A stretch of 64,000 nt of DNA from Syncephalis fuscata S228 (taxonomy: Eukaryota; Fungi; Zoopagomycota). A model generated the notes under the pieces. The model made no database searches. It saw only the letters and a program-made list of their open reading frames with translations, and was not told where the DNA came from. The DNA lies in the NCBI GenBank assembly GCA_025786725.1, contig JAHLTZ010000019.1, positions 186,001-250,000 on the forward strand. Direction: 5' to 3'. The first letter of the stretch is position 1. The number at the start of each line of letters is the position of its first letter. Shown here piece after piece: positions 1 through 15,987 of this stretch. A program made the position numbers and the translations under genes.

Positions 1-544
1 TTGAACCATCAGCACCTGTTTACGATGATGATTCGTCAGTTGTTTCACTTGGCGGGTCAGATTCTTTTATACTTTAGTTCATTATTATGCAATAAATTAA
101 CTATTCACACTAATATGTTAAATTACGACCAAAAAAGAATAAAATTATAATAGTGATCACGTATTTATGCTATATTAACAAATATATAGATATAAAATAG
201 AATAAAAATAGTGTCATGCTGAGTGTGTAATCTATGTTGGATCAAATATTGATTATAATCATATTGCCATTTAATAAAGTGTAATGGCATCTAATTGCTA
301 TTTGGAATGCTTATATACCTATTGTTGATTATACATAGATTATTATTAATTTTGTTTGATGCTTTAATGAATATATACACGAATTATTTTGTATTATTTG
401 CAATAGTCGTTTATTTATAATATATATGCTTCATATAAACCATTGACACATGTATTAATTTGACTTATAACTGTATTTGATAAGATATCTTGAAGATATT
501 TTACTTCTATACTTAATCTGGCTGAACTATTGTTTTAATCATGT

Positions 545-2447
545 TTAAAAACGTGGCTTTTTTGTTATTTTCAGTTGTATTTTACTAGAATGTATCATTG
601 GATTGTAAATATGGCCTGTATGCATGTCAATAAATGATTTTTTCTCATCTCTTTCTTTAAGTATTGCGCATAGGGATCCAAAAAGTGGAGCAATATATCC
701 GTCTAATGGACAAGTAATTGAACGTAGTAGATTTCCATTTTGAGCATACAAGACATCGAATATTCACTTATGTTGAATGAAAATAAGCTTCTCCCTGTAT
801 AATTTGGTAATTATCATGCTGTTTATATTTTGACTTCATAATACACGCCTTTGGTCGGAACTATCAGCTAGTAGTAATTGGCCGTAATCTTTGTTTTTAC
901 ATAGTGATTGTAATAAACTGTTTGATAAAAACTTGCCCATTCCAAACAATAGCAATAAAATGCTAAAATTTGTATCATTAGTGGACTTTTTAAAATTGTT
1001 TACATATCTTATATTAATTAAGCAAATCTTCTCCATATACATCTTAGCACGAATTAAAACGTTTGAGCAATATGGGATGCTGAATTAATTAAATAAAATC
1101 TTTTTACACTGATGCTGCCCTTGTTGAACGTTAAATAAACTTCATTGGATATGCATCAATCGATTGTCAACATTAACTGCTTGCAGGTTTTGAATATTTA
1201 TAGACGTAGGATCAGTATCAAATTATACAAAGTCGTGTATTATTTTTCACGTTAATAATTGAAATTGATTACGAAAAATGAACTGAACAGAGATGGACGG
1301 TTTATTCATAGGAAATTCTGGACCATGTATCCATTATTTTTTATTTAGATTAACTAACTCAAATCTTTTCCATGACTCTTGTACATTGAAAGTCTTTAGC
1401 AGCATCCACTTGTCAAAAATACTATTTAAATAAAGTATTAATTGCTGTTTAGCTTTATCTACGCTTTGAAGGTAGATGAAATCAGGAGACGGATTGCCAG
1501 CATGACGCCATACTACCATTGCATCTCGGCGGCGTCTTTTTCGTCTATTTAACGATTCGATGACTGATGAACTAATAGAGTATTTATTTCCTCTTATGTA
1601 ATTTGCCTCCATTTCATTATATATTTATTATTGTAATAGCATTGATAAACAATTAATACCGTCATTATCATAACTAATTATTATTTATCTATTGGATCGC
1701 CAATATTTATAAATTTTACGTCATTGTATGTATTATGAGAATATTGGCTAAACGAACCGATGTGTTTTGTAGACATATTTAACTATGACTTTGCCATTAA
1801 ACAAGAGTAATGACAAAAAATAGCTAATTCTTTCCATGCTAGTTCTTTGTTGCTGTACTTATTCTTCTTGCTAAAAATATCGTGTTGAATTGACCAGACT
1901 GTTGAGCCTTCTTCATCCTGAACCAAGCCATACCAAAAATTTACGTCGATTATTTCCAGTTGAGTAAATTTCCTGATCGGTAGTCGGCACGATCGTTTTT
2001 GGAATCAACCTGTCATAAAGTTGCGGACATTTTGTCGACGCCAATGGTAGGCGTAAAACCATCGAGCGTTACTGAAACTAAGATCGATAGCAAATCATTA
2101 ACTGGCAATGTAAATTCATTATTGTTGTCATTGACAGGTGAAATGCTAGATGCTAATAAATGTTTTTGTTTTGCTTGATTTACATTGGGCTTAGACTCTT
2201 TTGATTTTGATTTAGCATTAATGTGCCAAATGTATCATACAAGCCATTCTTTTTCACTCTAGTCACTAAAACAAAATGCTCGTTTATATTGTTGTTCCCA
2301 ATAATCAGGTCGATCAACTATGATTTGGTAAATAAATTGACAGCTGATGACAAAAAGTACCAATTCTTCCTCTTCTATGAAACGGCACAAATACGATAAG
2401 ATATCGTGGTTTTTCCAGAAATAGCTGCTGTTAGTACTTAAAGCCAT
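545..2447 (-). pseudogene. Degenerate F-box-domain protein gene (lineage-expanded type with C-terminal beta-rich region)
   Basis: N-terminus FWKNHDILSYLCRFIEEEELVLFVISCQFIYQII..YWEQQYKRAF is F-box-like. The reading continues through in-frame stops TAG (2259-2261) and TGA (2235-2237), shifts frame to RWFYAYHWRRQNVRNFMTG and meets another TGA (2005-2007). Further same-strand ORF fragments run down to 545; the 3' limit is approximate. Confidence 0.65.
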
Positions 2448-2724
2448 AGTTAACTAAAAATAACCATGTTAAAAATACTAAATAATAGATAGAGAAACAA
2501 TAATAGATGCAATTAGAAGAAAAAGGCGTTACATGATCATGGCTGATTTATTCCATCCATAACACAATGGTTACACGATTGCATATGTTTAAGTCGCAAA
2601 TGAACATTATTACTATTTAATTTATAAATAAAATATATATTGAAATTACATAAAACGTAATGAATTGTCAATAAAAGCTATGTAAATGTCATTATCATAT
2701 TTAATAATTATAAGCATTTAGTTT

Positions 2725-5507
2725 TACTAAGAATACTTCTTCAAATTGATTGTTTTACGGTTTGTTTTAGTTTGACTATGGTTATTCATCATTTAAAATA
2801 TGCTGAATACTATTAAAATAAGCAAATAGTTATACATTTAATAGTTAGCAAATAAATAAGCATTATCAAAATACTACACAGCTATAGCACTTGTACTATA
2901 ATAGGTCTCAATTTTATTATGCAAACGCTAATTATTCCTAAAATTGCTATTCGCCGTTTTCGGGTCAATCATCATATTATCGAATACAATCGCATAGTCT
3001 TTCAACGATTCCCAGATATCTTGCCACACTAGGTTTTTTGGATTGATATCCTCCATTTTAAGATATCGATAATATTCGTTCCAATCATATTTCTTTGATT
3101 TTAAGCCACCTCCAATCAAAACTGCTATTAAGCGTTTGTTGTATTCATTGATAGACCTTATAGTCCCGCTCAAAGTATAACCATTTGTAGTAGCGACATC
3201 AATGGGATCTTTTGCTGGGCTGGCATTAAGGAAGTTGTAAAAATGCAATTTGTATCCACTTTTGTCTTTATCGACACAAATATCTAGCAACACCGTCAAT
3301 GTGGATATTAGTAAACAACAGCATACTTACCTAGAATATCGAGGTGAGCATACCATCCCCATTCCTTTATAGTGTTTAGTCCTAATCACAGTTCAGTTTA
3401 TAATATACATGGACAATACAAGCTTGTACCTTTTACAATTTTTTGCCATAACGGCAGCATCTCTTTTAAATCATGCTCGCTTTGTTTAGAGTTTTCTTTG
3501 AATTTTTCATTAAAATTGTCGTATGTTTTTTTACACTTGTAGTATGGTACGATATAACAAATGGCGTTACCAAATGTGAATTTCTTTTGAGGTACGGCAA
3601 ACGAGATACTATGATCCTCACTATGTATCGGAGATTGGCCCAGTAGATCCTGTTGATCATAGCATTTGTTAGCTTCGTATATCTATCGTTTACAAAACTT
3701 ACATTGTATAATATAAGTGCATTACTTTTTGTATCTGATCTTGGCCCGCACACAAGCCTAATGGGATTGCCATGCTGCGTTCCTGTAATATAATATACAC
3801 CTCCATTTGTGTGTCTAGTGTTTGTCAACTGGATATCATATACGCCAAGTACACTATTTAATGCACTGTTTGCATTCCCCGTGGATTCTATATAAGTAAT
3901 ATCGTTAGTAAAAGCAAAAGAATAGCTTGGTGTAGATACTTGCTAGTGTTTTCGAATAAACTTGATATATCGTTACTGGGTGCGGCTTGAGCGACCGATA
4001 CTAGCATGAGCGTGGTAGCAGCGATAGTAAGAATGGATTTCATCGTAAACATGGCTATGTCAAGGCTCAGTCGTCGAATAAAGGCTGTACTTTCTATGAA
4101 GCTAATGTGCAAGCAAATATGATGTAATGGCTAGACAAACTGACATGCTAAAAATGCGATATATATAGCAAAATATATCATGGGATAGTTTATATGTTTT
4201 TGTAAACTGGAAAAATACAATGTAGGCGTTTCAGTAAAATTGCAAAAAAGCACATGGAATAAACCGAAAGCAGCAATCTTCGTTATTCGAATACGGAATT
4301 TGAAAATACAAATGTTTTGGCGTTGCATTCTTACTTCTATATATACATATATTGAATGGCACAAAATGGATAAAATGTGGCTTATTGTAGTGATACCATT
4401 TTGTATGGCTATTATTCTCTTAAGCATTGATATCAAAAATAACCATATAACAGATGCTGTAAATTCAAGCACAAATTCCAGTAATACACATTACGACTAA
4501 TCAGCGACTGTATAGCTTTGCAACAATATAAATAATTGCGATTAAAACAACCCGTAATTTTAATTTACATTGCACAATGATAGGTCATTATTTAATTTAG
4601 ATTCACGTATACATACAACATGCATAAATAAATTTAAATACCATATAGTTAAGACAAATCAACAGTAGTATACTCCAAAGAATAGGAATAACAAGGCGGC
4701 ATCGAATTGATAACCCACTTGATGAATATCATGTTATGCCATATAAAGACATTACCTGAAACGAGAAAGTTTAAAATTACAGTGGTCATGCTCAGAGAAA
4801 TGGTTTATTACGGCATTGCTTTGAATTGCCGATTTTCAATTCTATTTTTAGTTTAGGTTTAGTTTTCTTTCGCTTTTACATTTTTGCAGTTGTTGTAAAA
4901 CAAATGCTAGTGGAAAAGCTACTTTTATGTTCTGTAGAATAGTTTGTATATTATAGCCTTCTTTAATATTAGACTAGTGCATAATTGAACATACCAACAG
5001 GCACTCAATGTTGTTTACTGCATATCAAACCTTAATACTGCAGCTTGCTAGCTCGGCACTAATTTAGTTTATTTTGGTTTCTATTGTAAAATAAATAAGA
5101 TTTTGAAATGAATGGCTTATTTGAGTATGTCTTTATCTTTTGGTTAATTACATTGATTAAGCCAAATCTACATTAGTTTAACGGTCAGATTAGCATATTG
5201 ATCTATCAAGTATACTATTATACACTGATTGTTTATTGAGTATGCAAATAACTTGGTATACATAATTACAAATAGCCAAATCATTGGTTTAGCTTATTGA
5301 ACTGGTAGTATTTCTAACAACATAATATACATCGCCAATATATATATATATTACTAGTTGATTTATACTAATGTTTATTTCCTAGGCATTCTGACATTTT
5401 TGTAATATGCAAAATTATAATTTCATTATCAGCCTAATAATATCCTGTTATTTATATATGTGTAGGATTATATGGTCGATATAACAATATTTTACCTAAT
5501 ATCAATT
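2725..5507. repeat. Left arm of large inverted repeat (~2.78 kb)
   Basis: Reverse complement matches 13223-15987 along its whole length at roughly 98% identity by eye. Paired ORFs in the track include 2928-3299 vs 15422-15793 and 3466-3828 vs 14893-15255. Outer end is tactaagaatacttcttcaaattga, inner end is tttacctaatatcaatt. Confidence 0.97.
2928..4052 (-). CDS. Secreted kinase-fold (pseudokinase-like) protein, copy A, 5 exons, 306 aa
   Basis: Mirror image of the 14669-15793 gene with all splice sites and the frame intact. Signal peptide MFTMKSILTIAATTLMLVSVAQA. First intron is GC-AG (donor at 3943). Confidence 0.85.
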
Positions 5508-6092
5508 GTATAAATAGTTTAATAAGAATAGCGGTTTTTAGTATAATTATATTTACCATGGCTTAAAAATTAGCTAGTAAAATATTATATAGATTTAGTT
5601 ATTATAACTGTTTAAGGTCTGCATAAATAATTTTGTTATAGCCATTAAATAAATAGCACAATACTAACTTAATAGTAAAAATACTGTTAATAGCTGGCAA
5701 TCCTAGAGTGCTAACATTACAGACAGCAGACTCAATACTTTAACTAATCAGTAAAATATTTCAATTATTATACAAAATACTTGATTAACTATAATATAAT
5801 TAATTGATAAAGTATAGAATTGAATGCTAATTATTCAGTTTATTGTTACTAAAACAATTGATTATCATACATCTAAAATATAACAACTAATATCATTTTC
5901 AACAATAATAAATTTTTACTATTATTATAGCGGTGGTATCATTGGTTGTTAACACGCCAATCTTTCTTGGCTTTGCTTACACGTGCTTGTTTGTTATTGC
6001 TACCATATTACTATACTACTTGTCTCAACTGCTATTGCACTATTACCACACTACCACTGCCATTATCATTACTATTATTCTATAGCTTATTG

Positions 6093-6143
6093 GTAAGTGT
6101 AGGTTTAGACACGACTAACTTTGTAAAAATTGCTTGTCCGTAG
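6093..6143 (+). other. Probable 5'-UTR intron of CHD1
   Basis: gtaagt donor, gactaac branch site, ccgtag acceptor, 51 nt like the other introns here. Confidence 0.55.
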
Positions 6144-6370
6144 CAACAATGGTCCAATATATTTATTGGCTACAATGACGAAAAAAGAATGAAGTATTCT
6201 AGTAGAATAATAATTCACTTATTCTCCTTATTTTCTCACTCCTATATATTCACACTTGTTTGTATTGGCATCGCGTGTTGACATTCGTGAATTTTAGATT
6301 GCTAATAATAACATCGCTTCTCGCTGATCACTACTTCTCTGACGTTACGGACTTGCTTATTTCTCGTGTC

Positions 6371-9300
6371 ATGGCTGGTGAGCCTTTTATGCAGCGGCTT
6401 GAAGATCAATTGAGCGGATAGACTGCATGGCATCATCTATCGAGAATTCCATCATCTGTTAGCAACAATAACTTATTTTCAATTGGAATAAGCTTTGCTA
6501 TCGATAGTGTGTCGGCTATCTGTCCGCTCAATTGAGTCTCCTGCTAAACTATTAAACGCCTTGTACTAATTCTACTTGTATGATTGCAGAACGTGCACAG
6601 GCTGATATTTTTACCGCGTATGACGAAGAAGAGGACGATGATGTAATTCTGGGTGGCATTGCAGCCACACCTGTCAGTCTATCGGAAGCGAGCGACTTGA
6701 GCGACGGAGACTCGAACAAGCAGTTTAGTGGAGCTGAAAAGCACGGACTAACCGACCTAACGTCGATAGCAACGGCAGCAGCAATGGCGCGTCAACAAAG
6801 TAAAGCTATTGATAGCAGCAATAGTCATAGTAGTAAAAATAATAATAACAATAACAGCCATAGTAATGTCATGACTGTATTTGCCAGTGATGAAGATGCT
6901 TTTATAGACGAGTTTGACGTATCATTTGAAGAATTAAGTGGTGCAGAGGATTTTCGTCCTACTAAATCGCACATATCACACGCGACCAATAGCAAATCAT
7001 CTCATGAACGTTCTGTTAAAAAAAGCAAACGCAACCGTTTTCTGGACGATGAAGACGATGAAGAAGACGATGAAGATGGCGATGATGATAATCGTCATCG
7101 AAATAAGCCTAGTAATCGCAGTAGACATGAAGCGTTAGATGCCGATCTGTACGGACTACGTCGATCATCGCGTGTTCGCTCAGTGTCTCATCAATATCAA
7201 GAGGTATGTATATATGCTATATGGATTCATTCTACGTGCAAACAAGTAACTTATATTTTTCTAGTCGGATGATGATAGCGTTTATGGAGGCGACAATTAT
7301 GGACATAATCAAAAGGATTATAATCAATATGGCGACTCGTTTCTTTCTACTGAAGAAAATGAAAGTGATGAAGATGAAGATGACGACGACGACGACGATG
7401 ACGATGACGACGGTGATTATGAGTATGGATCTAAGAAGCGTAAAGGTAGTAGAAAAACAAAAACGAAGCCAAAGAAAACAGCAAAGCCCCGTACATTGAC
7501 CAATCGACCAGTCAGTAAGTAATAAAAGCGATGTATACATATTAATTAGCTTATTATTATTATTATTATTATTATTATATTTAATAGGACAAATGGAAGA
7601 ATATGTGCCTAAATTTGCTGAAGAAAACGGATCATCAAGCGATGGCGAATGGTTTGCCAATAAAAAGGCCAAAGTTCGTAAATGTAAGTCATAGGCTAAG
7701 TGTTGTATTTATAATTGCTAATAAGTATTGTTGATAGCCCGAAATAGTGATGATGCTAATAGTTATTTACGCTCTTCAAATCGATCACGTACGGGTGCAG
7801 TTGATTATGGCGAGTTAAATAATCAAGATTGGGGATTATCAGATGAGGATTATGCCATTTATGAAATCCATAAAACTACAAATGTTAAAGGTAAATAATA
7901 ATAATAATAACAATGTATTAATGGTAAATTTAATTAATTAACATAATTTATATTGTTAATACAATCACCGATTTAATGATCTAATTCTAGTTGAAGAGGA
8001 GGAAGGTGATGTAATTGAAAGTATTCATGATTATCGCACACAATCAGGAATAGGTATGTTAGCAAGTTAAATAGTAGATTTAGTATTTAATAATTATAAT
8101 AGAAATATCCGACGATGTGCCATCCGAAGAGCTGCAGTTCCTTGTCAAATGGAAAGGCTGGAGCCATTTACATGATACTTGGGATGCATATAATGATTTG
8201 CGTGGATTTAAAGGATTTAAACGCGTTGATAATTTTATTCGACAAGTTGTTGCGTATGACCAAGCCATTCGTGCCGATCCTACAACAACACGCGAGGAAA
8301 TAGAACAGCATGATATCAATGTTGAGATTGAACGGGCTGCTCTTGAAGATTACAAAACAGTTGAACGCGTCATTGCTAGTCGCCAAACGACTTCACAAAG
8401 TACACCGCCTGGAGAAACACCTCGATCACCATCTGGTGTGACTATTATTGAGTATTTATGCAAGTGGAAACGATTGCCGTACGTTCAGTGTACCTGGGAA
8501 CCGGCTGATTTGATATCTGAACGATTTCAGGCGGAGATTGACGCGTTTTTAGAGCGTGAACAGCATATGCGAGTGCCACACCGTAGTGTTACCTTTGGAC
8601 GACATAGACCACGACCAACATTTAAACGCATGACGGCTCAGCCGGACTATTTGGTTGGCGGCCAACTGCGTGATTATCAGCTTACAAGTCTAAACTGGAT
8701 GAGCTATTTATGGTCACGTAATGAAAATGGCATTCTAGCAGTAAGCTACATTTAATAGTATATACTACTAGATTATAATAACGTTTATTATATAATGATA
8801 GGATGAAATGGGACTTGGCAAGACGGTACAAACTATTTCATGGCTATCATATTTATACCATACTGCGGATATTTATGGACCATTTTTAGTTGTTGTACCT
8901 TTATCGACCCTTGGCAATTGGCAAAAAGAATTTGCTCGTTGGGCACCCGATATGAATATCATTGCGTATATAGGCGATAGTAAAAGTCGTGAATTTATAC
9001 GCGATTACGAGTTTTATTTACCAAGTACTGGACAAAGTGGACGTCGAGTCAAGTTCAACGTATTACTTACAACATATGAATTGATTCTTAAGGACCGACG
9101 TGACCTTGGCGCTATTCGTTGGGCCTTCTTGGCCGTTGACGAAGCCCATCGACTTAAGAATAGTGAATCGCAGTTACACGAAGTGTTGTCTGAATTCCAC
9201 CATACTAATCGACTACTAATTACCGGTACACCATTACAAAACTCAGTTAAAGAGTTATACGCTCTCGTTAACTTTTTAATGCCTGATCAGCATGCAATGG

Positions 9301-12300
9301 CCGCCGAATTCGAGTTTGATGTTGAAGGTGCCAGCAGTGAACAGCAAGAAACGAAGATTAGAGAGCTACACGAGTTATTACGTCCACTTATGCTGCGTCG
9401 ATTAAAGAAAGATGTAGAAAAGTCGCTGCCAAAGAAGACAGAGCGTATTCTACGTGTTGAACTCTCTCCTATGCAAGTTCATTATTACAAGAATATTCTT
9501 ACTCGTAATTTTGAAATACTAAATCGTGGCATCAGTGGACCAGGCCAACTTAGCATGCTTAATATTGCTATTGAATTACAAAAAGCAAGTAATCATCCTT
9601 ATTTATTTGAAGGTGCCGAACCTATGGGCATGTCGCGCGAAGAACAGCTACGTGGGCTTATTATGAATAGCGGCAAAATGGTATTACTCGACAAGCTACT
9701 AACTCGACTTCGACAAGGTGGCCATCGAGTATTAATCTTTTCACAAATGGTACGTCTACTTGATATTATGCAAGATTATATATCATTGCGCGGCTTTCCC
9801 CATCAACGACTTGATGGCAGTGTGCCTAATGAAGTGCGTAAAAAGGCCATTGATCATTTTAATGCACCTGGATCACCTGATTTCTGCTTTTTACTATCAA
9901 CACGAGCCGGTGGTCTGGGTATTAATTTGGAAACAGCCGATACAGTTATTATTTTCGATTCTGATTGGAATCCACAAAACGATCTACAGGCAATGGCACG
10001 TGCCCATCGTATTGGCCAGACTAGAACGGTGAATGTCTATCGATTTGTATCAAAGGGTACAATTGAAGAAGAAGTACTTGAACGAGCAAAGCGCAAAATG
10101 GTACTCGAATACTTGCTTGTTAGTGGTATGGATACATCAGGCGCTAACTTACTTAAAGAACGTGGTGCCACTGCTCCAAAGTCAAAATCATATGCCGGTC
10201 AATTTACTAAAGAAGAATTAAATGCCATTTTAAAATTCGGTGCTAAAAATCTATTTCAAGAAACAACGAATCAGAAAAAACTTGATGATCTGGATTTAGA
10301 TGAAATTCTTGATCGTGCTGAACAACACGACACGGCAGCAGTTGAAGAGGCTGCAGCGGGTGGTGCACAAACCAGTGATGGTGGTGCCGAATTTCTTGCC
10401 CAGTTTCAAGTGGCCGACTATGGTGGCGACATGTCCTGGGAGGATATTGTACCGAAAGATGAACGGGAACGTATGGCGGCCGAGAAAGAAGCAAAAGCTC
10501 AAGCAGAAATGTGGTCAGCTACTCGTAAACGTAAAGCTGCTTCATCGGCCGCTAATGGTATACGTGAAGACTTGGAAGCCGTTGGTGAAGGACGAAAACG
10601 ATCACGCAGTACTCGACGTACTTCTACCAAACGCAATGCTAGATTCGAGGCCAATAGCGATGATGATGATGATGATGACGATGATCATCATGCCGGTGGT
10701 GGTGGTGGCGACGATGAAGATGATAATGATGGCTTTACAGAACGTGAAGTACGCGCATTAGCTCGTGGTATGATGCGTTTTGGTCATCCTACCGATCGCT
10801 ACGATCCAGTAGTAACCGAGGCTGATTTGTCTAGTAAAGATAAGGAGCTGGTTATGACTATGGCCAAGAATATCGAACAGCTATGTAAAGATACTGTTTC
10901 AGCCCAGCTTGGCGATGTTGATGATATATTTGTGGCATTAACAACACGTCGCAAGGCCGACAAAGCCATTCAATGCGAAATGAACGGCGTTAACATTAAT
11001 GCCGGCCAAATGCTGCAAAGATTAGCCGATCTACGCTGTCTTCATAAACAGCTAAATAACACTGTTGAATCTATTCGTTTTCGTATGCCTGTACAACTAC
11101 GCGGCACACTTAACTGGAGTGTTCCATGGACGCCACGCGATGATGCCTGTCTTATGGTAGGCATTCATCGATACGGATTTGGTGCATGGGAGCGTATACG
11201 TGATGATAAAGAACTACAGCTTGACAAGAAGATATTTGGCGATGAACGTGGCACTCATGGTGAACGTCTAACACCAGGTCCAACTCATTTACAACGACGT
11301 GCTGACAATTTACTACGTTTACTGCGCGATGTAGAACGCGGCGTATCAGTATCGGTTCTAGCTAATGGTGTACGCCAACGAGCAACGAATGAATCGGGCA
11401 GTGATACACGTAGCAATGCACGTCGTCGTGGCGGTACTAATAGTAGTAGCGGTAGTAAACGTGCAGGTACCGGTACACGTTCTGTATCGACACCTACTCG
11501 ATCTTCACGTAGACGACATATTAAAACGGGCGATGAATCATCATCACTTAGTGAATTATCAGATAACGCACTTGCTACATCTGATTCAGATACAGCAATG
11601 CACACACCTAGAAAATCGAATACAACTGGATCAACAAAGCGATCAACACCAACAACAAGTAATGGACGGTCACGCAGTGGACATCATGCCAATGGTGGTG
11701 GTGGCAATACAGCAGATGCAACCGCTACTACTTATAATGACCATACAGATGAAGAGAAGTATGCTAGTATGGATGAAGCCGAATGTAAAGAATTATTACG
11801 ACCTGTACGACGTGCACTACGCTGGCTACAAACTGAATCGGAACAATGTCCACCTACTGAGAAGGTGGCCCGTACAACACAATGTGTTACTGATGTAGGT
11901 CGACACATTACACGGTTATTAAGTCAACGATTTGCCCGTGCAGCATCATCGGAACGAGCACGTTGGCGTCGTCATTTATGGAAGTTTGCCAGTTATTTCT
12001 GGCCTATTGAGATACGCGGTGAACGATTACGTGAACTTTATGAAAAGATGGAGCATCGTAAGTCCACTGGAGAGGAACAACAACAATCACCACCTCCACC
12101 ACCATTATCATCACCCTCACTAACAAAGCAACCATCTACAACATTAAAGAAAGTAATACTTCTAATGAGACCAATACCAATACCAATACTAATACCAATA
12201 CTTCCCATACTAATACACCTCATTTACATTCACATCACCATCATCACCATCATCATCATCATCCACACCATCCACATCACCATCACCACCACCATCATCA

Positions 12301-12312
12301 TCATTCAACGAC

Positions 12313-12344
<32 letters not shown>

Positions 12345-12403
12345 CAACAGCTGTTCGTGATACCACTGATCGATCAACAACAACAACACATCGTACAAGG
12401 TAA
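6371..12403 (+). CDS. CHD1: Chromodomain-helicase-DNA-binding protein 1 (CHD1/Hrp1-3 family chromatin remodeller)
   Basis: Tandem chromodomains ([15 protein letters not shown]; [10 protein letters not shown]), SNF2 ATPase ([41 protein letters not shown]), SANT/SLIDE ([27 protein letters not shown]) and C-terminal CHCT-like region. Start taken as ATG 6371 via a 7-nt microexon and intron 6378-6589. End taken as TAA 12401-12403 after correcting an apparent 1-nt deletion near 12143; the uncorrected ORF ends at 12527. Confidence 0.95.
6385..6548 (+). other. Long imperfect RNA hairpin inside CHD1 first coding intron
   Basis: tcaattgagcggataga (6406-6422) pairs with tctgtccgctcaattga (6519-6535). 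Inner stems are ctatcga/tcgatag and attcca/tggaat. Several apparent mismatches are G-U compatible on the + strand. Confidence 0.75.
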
Positions 12404-13222
12404 TAGTAATGGTATTAATGATTTTAATAATACATTTTATTACTATTACCATGATTACTTTTCTTTATTTCTTTTATTCTCTACTTGCTTTGATAATTTT
12501 CATTTCGATGCTTTTCTTATCTTTTAAACGTTACTCTACTCTTTTCTCTACTCACACGCCTCCGCTTCCTTCCTATCTTCAACTTCTAGTAATCTATGAA
12601 ATATATTCAAGTTTTTATTTCAATATATTATCACCAATTTGTATTACTATTATTGTTATTGTTATTGTTAGAATGCTGATTCGGTGCTAGCCATTGATTC
12701 CAGATAGACAAGCTAGCCATGGCTCGTTGTTGGTTTTTATAAAGTCTACTTGTAGGGCCGGTTTGTTCAATGGCTTGTTCTAGTAAATGGTTACTAATAC
12801 AGCTATATTAATAAGCTGCTAGTAAATAAATGTATATTATACTTGCATTTTTGTTAATGTATAGCGCATACTATTTAATTCATGAATGAATTCAAGTCGA
12901 GAAGGTGGCGACTCTGTTGAAGATGTTGGTGATGATGACGGTGTAGTCATTGTTGGTAAATGTAATATGAATAAATAGTTGGTTTAGTTAAACAGTATGT
13001 TAAACGAGAAGTAGTGTAGTGGAGGAAGCAATAAAGAAATATGTATTGAAAAAGGATAAATAATAATAATGATAGTAGACTAATATTTTACTAGAAAATA
13101 TACAGCCATATAGGTATTTATATTAAGTACATATTATTCGTGTACTACAAATATAAAGCTGACGTATAGTTTTAGGGATTATGGCTAGTTATAACACGCG
13201 ACAATATGTTTAACTTGCAAAT

Positions 13223-15987
13223 AATTGATATTAGGTAAATATTGCTATATCAACCATATAATCCTACACATATATAAATAACAGGATATTATTAGGCTGA
13301 TAATGAAATTATAATTTTGCATATTACAAAAATGTCAGAATGCCTAGGAAATAAACATTAGTATAAATCAACTAGTAATATATATATATATTGGCGATGT
13401 ATATTATGTTGTTAGAAATACTACCAGTTCAATGAGCTAAACCAATAATTTAACTATTTGTAATTATGTATACCAAGTTATTTGCATACTCAATAAACAA
13501 TCAGTGTATAATAGTATACTTGATAGATCAATATGCTAATCTGACCGTTAAACTAATGTAGATTTGGCTTAATCAATGTAATTAACCAAAAGATAAAGAC
13601 ATACTCAAATAAGCCATTCATTTCAAAATCTTATTTATTTTACAATAGAAACCAAAATAAACTAAATTAGTGCCGAGCTAGCAAGCTGCAGTATTAAGGT
13701 TTGATATGCAGTAAACAACATTGAGTGCCTGTTGGTATGTTCAATTATGCACTAGTCTAATATTAAAGAAGGCTATAATATACAAACTATTCTACAGAAC
13801 ATAAAAGTAGCTTTTCCACTAGCAGTTGTTTTACAACAACTGCAAAAATGTAAAAGCGAAAGAAAACTAAACTAAACTAAAAATAGAATTGAAAATCGGC
13901 AATTCAAAGCAATGCCGTAATAACCATTTCTCTGAGCATGACCATTGTAATTTTAACTTTCTCGTTTCAGGTAATGTCTTTATATGGCATAACATGATAT
14001 TCATCAAGCGGGTTATCAATTCATGCCGCCTTGTTATTCTATTCTTTGGAGTAAACTCTGTTGATTTGTCTTAACTATATGGCATTTAAATTTATTTATG
14101 CATGTTGTATGTATACGTGAATCTAAATTAAATAATGACCTATCATTGTGCAATGTAAATTAAAATTACGGGTTGTTTTAATCGCAATTATTTATATTGT
14201 TGCAAAGCTATACAGTCGCTGATTAGCCGTAATGTGTATTACTGGAATTTGTGCTTGGATTTACAGCATCGGTTATATGGTTATTTTTGATATCAATGCT
14301 TAAGAGAATAATAGCCATACAAAATGGTATCACTACAATAAGCCACATTTTATCCATTTTGTGCCATTCAATATATGTATATATAGAAGTAAGAATGCAA
14401 CGCCAAAGCATTTGTATTTTCAAATTCCGTATTCGAATAACAAAGATTGCTGCTTTCGGTTTATTCCATGTGCTTTTTTGCAATTTTGCTGAAACGCCTA
14501 CATTGTATTTTTCCAGTTTACAAAAACATATAACTATCCCATGATATATTTTGCTATATATATCGCATTTTTAGCATGTCAGTTTGTCTAGCCATTACAT
14601 CATATTTGCTTACGCATTAGCTTCATAAAAGTACAGCCTTTATTCGACGACTGAGCCTTGACATAGCCATGTTTACGATGAAATCCATTCTTACTATCGC
14701 TGCTACCACGCTCATGCTAGTATCGGTCGCTCAAGCCGCACCCAGTAACGATATATCAAGTTTATTCGAAAACACTAGCAAGTATCTACACCAAGCTATT
14801 CTTTTGCTTTTACTAACGATATTACTCATATAGAATCCACGGGGAATGCAAACAGTGCATTAAATAGTGTACTTGGCGTATATGATATCCAGTTGACAAA
14901 CACTAGACACACAAATGGAGGTGTATATTATATTACAGGAACGCAGCATGGCAATCCCATTAGGCTTGTGTGCGGGCCAAGATCAGATACAAAAAGTAAT
15001 GCACTTATATTATACAATGTAAGTTTTGTAAACGATAGATATACGAAGCTAACAAATGCTATGATCAACAGGATCTACTGGGCCAATCTCCGATACATAG
15101 TGAGGATCATAGTATCTCGTTTGCCGTACCTCAAAAGAAATTTACATTTGATAGCGCCATTTGTTATATCGTACCATACTACAAGTGTAAAAAGACATAC
15201 GACGATTTTAATGAAAAATTCAAAGAAAACTCTAAACAAAGCGAGCATGATTTAAAAGAGATGCTGCCGTTATGGCAAAAAATTGTAAAAGGTACAAGCT
15301 TGTATTGTCCATGTATATTATAAACTGAACTGTGGTTAGGACTAAACACTATAAAGGAATGGGGATGGTATGCTCACCTCGATATTCTAGGTAAGTATGC
15401 TGTTGTTTACTAATATCCACATTGACGGTGTTGCTAGATATTTGTGTCGATAAAGACAAAAGTGGATACAAATTGCATTTTTACAACTTCCTTAATGCCA
15501 GCCCAGCAAAAGATCCCATTGATGTCGCTACTACAAATGGTTATACTTTGAGCAGGACTATAAGGTCTATCAATAAATACAACAAACGCTTAATAGCAGT
15601 TTTGATTGGAGGTGGCTTAAAATCAAAGAAATATGATTGGAACGAATATTATCGATATCTTAAAATGGAGGATATCAATCCAAAAAACCTAGTGTGGCAA
15701 GATATCTGGGAATCGTTGAAAGACTATGCGATTGTGTTCGACAATATGATGATTGACCCGAAAACGGCGAATAGCAATTTTAGGAATAATTAGCATTTGC
15801 ATAATAAAATTGAGACCTATTATAGTACAAGTGCTATAGCTGTGTAGTATTTTTGATAATGCTTATTTATTTGCTAACTATTAAATGTATAACTATTTGC
15901 TTATTTTAATAGTATTCAGCATATTTTAAATGATGAATAACCATAGTCAAACAGTAAAACAGTCAATTTGAAGAAGTATTCTTAGTA
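13223..15987. repeat. Right arm of large inverted repeat (~2.77 kb)
   Basis: Reverse complement of 2725-5507, differing by scattered transitions, several 1-nt indels and a ~10-nt indel near the outer end. Confidence 0.97.
14669..15793 (+). CDS. Secreted kinase-fold (pseudokinase-like) protein, copy B, 5 exons, 306 aa
   Basis: Exons 14669-14777, 14834-15018, 15072-15291, 15340-15390 and 15438-15793 join into 921 nt with no internal stop. Introns are 47-56 nt, most with a clear ctaac/ctaat-type branch site. Signal peptide followed by segments matching kinase subdomains. Confidence 0.85.

Follow-up and report, generated by a model that had tools for sequence, protein, structure and literature searches.

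Inverted copies of an orphan secreted-protein gene around CHD1 in Syncephalis fuscata: a probable recent segmental duplication

Introduction

The ampliconic palindromes of the human Y chromosome have arms that are more than 99.9% identical, are conserved across species and undergo arm-to-arm gene conversion. Among fungi, a 24-kb flip/flop region on Saccharomyces chromosome XIV carries 4-kb inverted repeats of the YNL018C/YNL034W 'Centroid' gene pairs, members of a fast-duplicating family that are constantly homogenised; inversion of the region recurs over evolutionary, not laboratory, timescales, and both of its orientations have been documented within and between species (PMC9731477). In the mating-type flip-flop of Ogataea polymorpha and Komagataella phaffii, an inversion induced by starvation moves one of two MAT gene sets under centromeric or telomeric repression (PMC4238957, PMC5720833). 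Here we describe a locus of Syncephalis fuscata S228 in which two inverted repeat arms of about 2.8 kb, each holding a gene for a secreted orphan protein, enclose the chromatin-remodeller gene CHD1. The window analysed was a stretch of 64,000 nucleotides (contig C101, positions 186001-250000). Of the systems described so far, the Saccharomyces chromosome XIV region is the closest.

An initial annotation of the window had proposed that the arms and the DNA between them form an invertible flip-flop cassette, and had named a recent inverted duplication as the simpler reading. The evidence presented here favours the simpler reading: the locus probably arose by recent inverted segmental duplication, at the DNA level, of a member of an expanding, species-restricted family of orphan secreted proteins.

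Results

Two arms of identical extent enclose CHD1

The window was compared with itself and with the whole assembly (29.4 Mb in 371 contigs). BLAST recovered the arms as a single alignment of 2725-5507 against 15987-13223; its 2784 columns, 98.13% identical, included 32 mismatches and 12 gap openings. This agrees, down to the coordinates, with the initial annotation of sharp-ended inverted arms about 98% identical. A repeat finder reported the same structure as four inverted segments (2770-5492 against 13237-15952, 98-100% identity), and in a MAFFT alignment the arms were separated by 29 transitions, 4 transversions and 11 indel events. The pair was the sole repeat of at least 150 bp within the window.

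The two arms had the same extent, introns and non-coding flanks included, and their similarity ended abruptly at all four junctions. A sensitive search past the arm ends found no significant residual homology; the best match was 64% over 129 AT-rich bases and lay out of register. Because the arms are identical in extent and have no homology outside their ends, we infer a single copy-and-paste origin. A tandem duplication followed by inversion is less likely, since it needs a breakpoint exactly at the copy boundary to leave arms of identical extent. Old paralogues homogenised by conversion at this locus were rejected as an explanation, given that no significant homology continued past either arm end.

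No target-site duplication was found at the arm junctions, and the scanned open reading frames of the arms, the exon pieces and the arm protein contained no Pfam domain and so no transposase, as the initial annotation had also reported. The arm-spacer-arm unit was single-copy in the assembly apart from a haplotig, C149, which carries the allelic region. These results count against a mobile element, whether a composite transposon or a foldback element.

The arms carry two copies of an orphan secreted-protein gene

The arm genes face outward, have five exons and encode a 306-aa product with a signal peptide. Gene structure and allele content were read from spliced, RNA-like contigs from one public run. 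A 910-nt RNA contig placed the coding exons of the left copy on the minus strand at 4052-3944, 3887-3703, 3649-3430, 3381-3331 and 3283-2928, separated by introns of 47-56 nt. Intron 1 (3888-3943, mirrored in the right arm) has a GC..AG splice pair, which the RNA contig supported. The ATG of the left copy at 4052 leaves 1455 bp of upstream DNA within the arm and the stop codon at 2928-2930 leaves 203 bp of 3' flank, so the anatomy first proposed for each arm, a complete outward-facing gene between these flanks, was accurate.

Translated exon by exon, the left copy equals P0121, a 306-aa S. fuscata 'hypothetical protein'. The exons of the arm gene were searched singly, and the database record P0121 was the sole full-length protein query. 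With the last exon, P0121 alone was matched among 1.84 billion representative proteins and no relative was found; among 5.8 billion proteins, the relatives of P0121 were itself and one paralogue at 34% identity. P0121 had no match in Pfam, even at E values up to 10, and none among PDB sequences, and its AlphaFold2 model, with a mean pLDDT (predicted local distance difference test score) of 38, was too poor to use. In an atlas search, the C-terminal exon alone returned nothing beyond weak, unnamed bacterial clusters. By language-model features P0121 lay nearest the APH, Kdo and Pkinase clusters, at 0.93-0.94 and without a Pfam or PDB match, and a kinase-like fold for the arm protein is accordingly a lead rather than a finding.

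The two C101 copies differed at nine coding sites, four synonymous and five non-synonymous, with a ratio of non-synonymous to synonymous substitution rates (dN/dS) of ~0.32; four of the five replacements altered charge. The 910-nt RNA contig carried the right-copy allele at 9/9 of these diagnostic sites, including two alleles private to the right arm (equivalent to 3146T and 3567C). This shows that the right copy is expressed, and the private alleles in the RNA contig establish its arm as a genuine locus distinct from the left one.

Recent pairs of the family occur in both orientations

The arm gene belongs to a family with a conserved 5' part. A 571-base query spanning 3875-4445 (mirror ~14280-14850), which takes in the signal-peptide exon and ~390 nt before it, gave 37 matches in the assembly, among them the two copies in the window and that of the haplotig, and the paralogous matches had 68-78% nucleotide identity. 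The upstream part conserved across the family spans the 360-390 nt before the ATG. The proteins were far more divergent, two paralogues being only 34-36% identical, with a near-invariant signal peptide, and the last exon was found in just three paralogous places in the assembly. The conserved 5' part could be a shared promoter-leader module or could reflect ectopic conversion of 5' ends.

Family pairs were identified in an all-against-all comparison of 30 family loci, together with some further loci. This yielded at least eight other recent pairs on a shared contig, 93-99% identical and roughly half direct and half inverted (Table 1). On C279 there were three copies 98-99% identical to one another, two direct and one inverted, 31-177 kb apart; the duplicated segments on C279 and C46 reach beyond the 3.5-kb loci that were compared. 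The DNA bracketed by the family pairs was unrelated from pair to pair. Since neither orientation clearly predominates and the pairs have no enclosed DNA in common, the inverted layout around CHD1 is not special. The suggestion in the initial annotation that CHD1, as a conserved gene, stabilises the duplication thereby becomes unnecessary, since the other pairs bracket other DNA.

One of these pairs bears on conversion. In the inverted pair on C112 (~242.5 and 277.1 kb), a stretch at ~99% identity comprises upstream DNA and the first ~540 bp of the gene, and diverged homology continues past it, unlike in the C101 pair, where similarity simply stops. The abrupt drop to ~65% inside homologous sequence looks like the edge of a conversion tract, which would imply that conversion between family members occurs in this genome; between the arms of C101 no such tract was found. 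Beside the C112 arm, at ~241.7-242.4 kb, lies a dispersed repeat of ~660 bp with 696 first-look candidates genome-wide at 84-90% identity, likely a transposable-element fragment.

Table 1. Features of the locus in window coordinates and recent same-contig pairs of the gene family
Feature	Position	Strand or orientation	Length, spacer or distance	Identity	Basis or remark
Left arm of inverted repeat	2725..5507		2783 bp		BLAST, repeat finder; sharp ends
Right arm of inverted repeat	13223..15987		2765 bp		BLAST, repeat finder; private alleles
Unique spacer	5508..13222		7715 bp		Only other assembly copy is the colinear haplotig, C149:6124-13870
CHD1 chromatin-remodeller gene	6247..12527	+			Transcript contig starts at 6247; intron 1 is 6377-6588; stop codon ends at 12527
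Left copy of secreted orphan gene	2928..4052	-			RNA contig joints, exon-wise translation, exact P0121 match
Right copy of secreted orphan gene	14669..15793	+			Intact; RNA contig with right-copy alleles
Conserved upstream module	4053..4445	-	~390 nt		Mirror at ~14280-14668; conserved with signal-peptide exon
C101 pair		inverted	7.7-kb spacer	98.1%	
C13 pair		inverted	20.7-kb spacer	98.8% over 2.98 kb	
C112 pair	243 kb / 278 kb	inverted	about 33 kb	about 99% over 1.6 kb, then about 65%	
C279 pair	110.7 kb / 257.6 kb	inverted	about 147 kb	98.9% over at least 3.5 kb	
C279 pair	79.9 kb / 257.6 kb	inverted	about 177 kb	98.1%	
C279 pair	79.9 kb / 110.7 kb	direct	about 31 kb	98.2%	
C46 pair		direct	64 kb	98.7%	
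C112 pair	962 kb / 968.5 kb	direct	6.5 kb	94.9%	
C350 pair		direct	42 kb	93.3%	

Both assembled haplotypes have the same arrangement

The haplotig C149 (14,462 bp) was colinear with 525-13824 of the window at 98.5% identity and contained, in order, the left flank, the left arm, the whole spacer and 602 bp of the right arm; its orientation was that of C101. The first 943 bp of C149 match C101 colinearly in the part that precedes the window. A 310-bp stretch at 215-524 is present in C101 and missing from C149; it is not a dispersed repeat, having just three weak partial matches in the genome. The right flank has no haplotig in the assembly.

Divergence between the haplotypes fell from left to right. 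Allelic substitutions between C101 and C149 numbered 18.6 per kb in the left flank and 16.9 per kb in the left arm, ~10 per kb in the spacer between 5.5 and 7.5 kb, and 0 per kb across ~9.5-13.5 kb, from the spacer into the right arm. Judged from these substitution counts, the gradient points to an old crossover within CHD1 or to a loss-of-heterozygosity boundary there, and the continuous divergence on the left side is the pattern that an unrearranged haplotype block ending at an old crossover within CHD1 would be expected to give. The heterozygous block itself had no break across the left flank, the left arm and the left part of the spacer.

Both C101 copies of the arm gene are intact. In the left copy of C149, a TGG to TGA change in exon 3 (window equivalent 3431-3649) creates a premature stop at residue 166. 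Copies have therefore been lost as well as made, contrary to the proposal that recombination between the arms would yield variant proteins without gene loss.

Three arms that do not form a simple tree

Three full arms could be compared: the left and right arms of C101 and the left arm of C149. The C101 left arm was the outlier, with 40 unique alignment columns (~29 events), against 13 (12 events) for the C149 left arm and 7 for the right arm. The C149 left arm was 99.06% identical to the right arm and ~98% identical to its own allele. When the sites unique to the outlier were polarised with C350 paralogues at 70% identity, seven were derived and six ancestral, and the right arm and the C149 left arm therefore share six derived states.

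Two accounts fit these relationships equally well. In one, gene conversion carried right-arm sequence onto the C149 left arm. In the other, an ancestor of the C149-type left allele was the source of the right arm, which a later crossover in CHD1 placed on the other left haplotype; duplication followed by crossover also explains the identity of the haplotypes from ~9.5 kb rightwards. Differences between the two C101 arms were scattered evenly, the largest gap being 372 bp (P=0.28), and no conversion tract was found. The proposal that arm recombination shuffles polymorphisms between the two gene copies thus fares unevenly: the greater closeness of the C149 left arm to the right arm is compatible with it, but there are no tracts between the C101 arms and duplication plus crossover accounts for the same pattern. 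RIP-like mutation (repeat-induced point mutation) of the repeats was rejected as the source of the 29:4 transition excess in the arms, an excess also present among alleles of the unique left flank (35 transitions to 6 transversions).

An alternative explanation is that the locus is a flip/flop region on an evolutionary timescale, with gene-bearing repeats kept alike by conversion, sporadic re-inversion and both orientations present among strains, serving no regulatory role. The kb-sized, 98% identical arms of paralogous genes recall the documented case (PMC9731477), the six shared derived states tie the C149 left arm to the right arm more closely than to its own allele, and the step from ~99% to ~65% identity on C112 makes conversion between inverted family members visible elsewhere in the genome. 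Set against this, the two haplotype contigs agree in orientation and the heterozygous block has no break across flank, arm and spacer, the C101 arms lack conversion tracts, and duplication on one haplotype lineage with a crossover in CHD1 explains the arm relationships as well. We regard this alternative as unlikely.

A wider conjecture extends it to the whole family. S. fuscata might keep members of this orphan secreted, possibly kinase-like family as near-identical inverted pairs at several loci, held by conversion between their arms at about 98-99% identity, each pair a recurrent inversion polymorphism of the Saccharomyces chromosome XIV kind, with CHD1 lying in the smallest of the blocks. 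We think this rather improbable.

No support for an invertible cassette

The initial annotation had interpreted the locus as a flip-flop cassette. Across two haplotype contigs from one isolate (C101 and C149) the orientation was the same in 2/2, and the flipped arrangement was absent from every assembly contig searched; these data give no support for a cassette or switch. An inversion would, moreover, alter no link between gene and promoter, because the arms are symmetrical and CHD1 and the arm genes keep their own flanks. Inversion would thus have nothing to switch, and the equal frequency of direct pairs in the family counters the proposal as well.

A programmed switch of the kind that governs mating type in Ogataea and Komagataella, in which regulated recombination between the arms would invert CHD1 or change expression of the arm genes, has only the geometry of 2.8-kb inverted repeats around a short spacer to recommend it. 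What the repeats enclose is a single housekeeping gene with its own flanks, while each arm gene carries its own 1.45 kb of upstream DNA; there are no alternative gene sets, no recombinase was found in the Pfam scans, direct pairs are as frequent as inverted ones in the family, and one orientation only was found in the two haplotypes. Such a switch is very improbable.

Another explanation is an assembly artefact, in which a mis-join, between haplotypes or chimeric, produced an inverted copy that does not exist. It might be suspected because the assembly contains haplotigs and because the divergence between the arms (1.2-1.9%) is similar to that between left-flank alleles (1.9%), but it is scarcely credible. 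The right arm is distinct in sequence from both left arms, having 4-7 alleles that neither of them has, and RNA confirms private alleles in it. Its inner junction was independently assembled in C149, and on the outer side it borders unique DNA that carries a PLD-like gene and is no mirror image of the left flank. The differences between the arms, like those between flank alleles, have the spectrum of real mutation.

The spacer contains CHD1 alone

Assembly searches and Pfam upheld the initial description of the spacer as unique DNA of 7.7 kb in which CHD1 is the only gene. Pfam identified Chromo, SNF2-related, Helicase_C, CHD1/Hrp3 HTH domain and CHD1-like_C domains in its product, which matches the 1848-aa S. 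fuscata protein P0001 at 100% identity; P0001 maps from 6589 onward, to the stop at 12527. Inside the spacer the gene has ~740 bp of its own 5' flank and ~700 bp of its own 3' flank. The nearest relative, at 82% identity, is CHD1 of Syncephalis pseudoplumigaleata, which lies on a contig of only 2.6 kb.

An RNA contig joined 6376 to 6589, giving CHD1 a first intron of 212 nt with GT..AG ends; the other CHD1 introns seen were 49-61 nt. The third residue of the annotated protein begins at 6589, with ~7 coding nucleotides in exon 1. At 7045-7076, in the acidic N-terminal region of CHD1, RNA contigs had loose ends and a 22-letter alternative stretch, which is probably an allelic repeat-length variant.

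Discussion

We propose that a 2.8-kb segment, consisting of one family member with its promoter region, introns and 3' flank, gave rise by a single copying event to an inverted duplicate on the far side of CHD1. Birth-and-death evolution would have followed, with the right copy expressed, substitutions that were mostly charge-changing and a stop codon in one left allele. The family has undergone at least eight recent duplications within chromosomes, in both orientations, of which this would be one. We infer that the duplication is comparable in age to the haplotype split or younger than it. If homologous recombination between the two arms does now and then invert the spacer, as it may, the inversion would be a neutral by-product, not a device.

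Some considerations weigh against an inverted duplication of recent date as the full account. Many family pairs have a similar identity of 98-99%, and mutation offset by gene conversion could account for this level instead of recent origin. The three arms are neither clock-like nor tree-like in their differences, and some exchange from arm to arm may have occurred. A minority flipped isomer, or a polymorphism of orientation in the species, may also exist, the data here being from a single isolate and at the level of contigs.

The value of the locus lies in being a well-delimited example of the expansion of a species-restricted secreted-protein family in an early-diverging mycoparasitic fungus. 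The mode of this expansion appears to be kb-scale copy-and-paste in both orientations, over distances from ~6 kb to 150 kb or more, accompanied by occasional conversion between copies and by early pseudogenisation. As a device the locus has little importance, and nothing points to a switch.

In comparison with known systems, the locus resembles the palindromes of the human Y chromosome in having gene-bearing inverted arms around a unique spacer, between which conversion is possible. Unlike those palindromes, its arms are 98.1% identical, the differences between them are evenly spread, and their age is not demonstrably above that of the haplotype split. The likeness to the mating-type system of the methylotrophic yeasts is one of geometry only, namely inverted repeats flanking a chromosomal segment; the CHD1 locus differs in having no alternative gene sets, symmetrical arms and no sign of inversion. 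From the Saccharomyces chromosome XIV region it differs in being found in one orientation (in two haplotype contigs), in that homogenisation is no more than a possibility and in having a single-gene spacer. If other isolates had both orientations, the locus would be a second fungal flip/flop region of the evolutionary kind, and one outside the budding yeasts. It shares with the Saccharomyces region kb-sized inverted repeats of complete paralogous genes, from a fast-evolving family, around unique housekeeping DNA, and in S. fuscata, as there, any inversion would be a by-product of homologous recombination.

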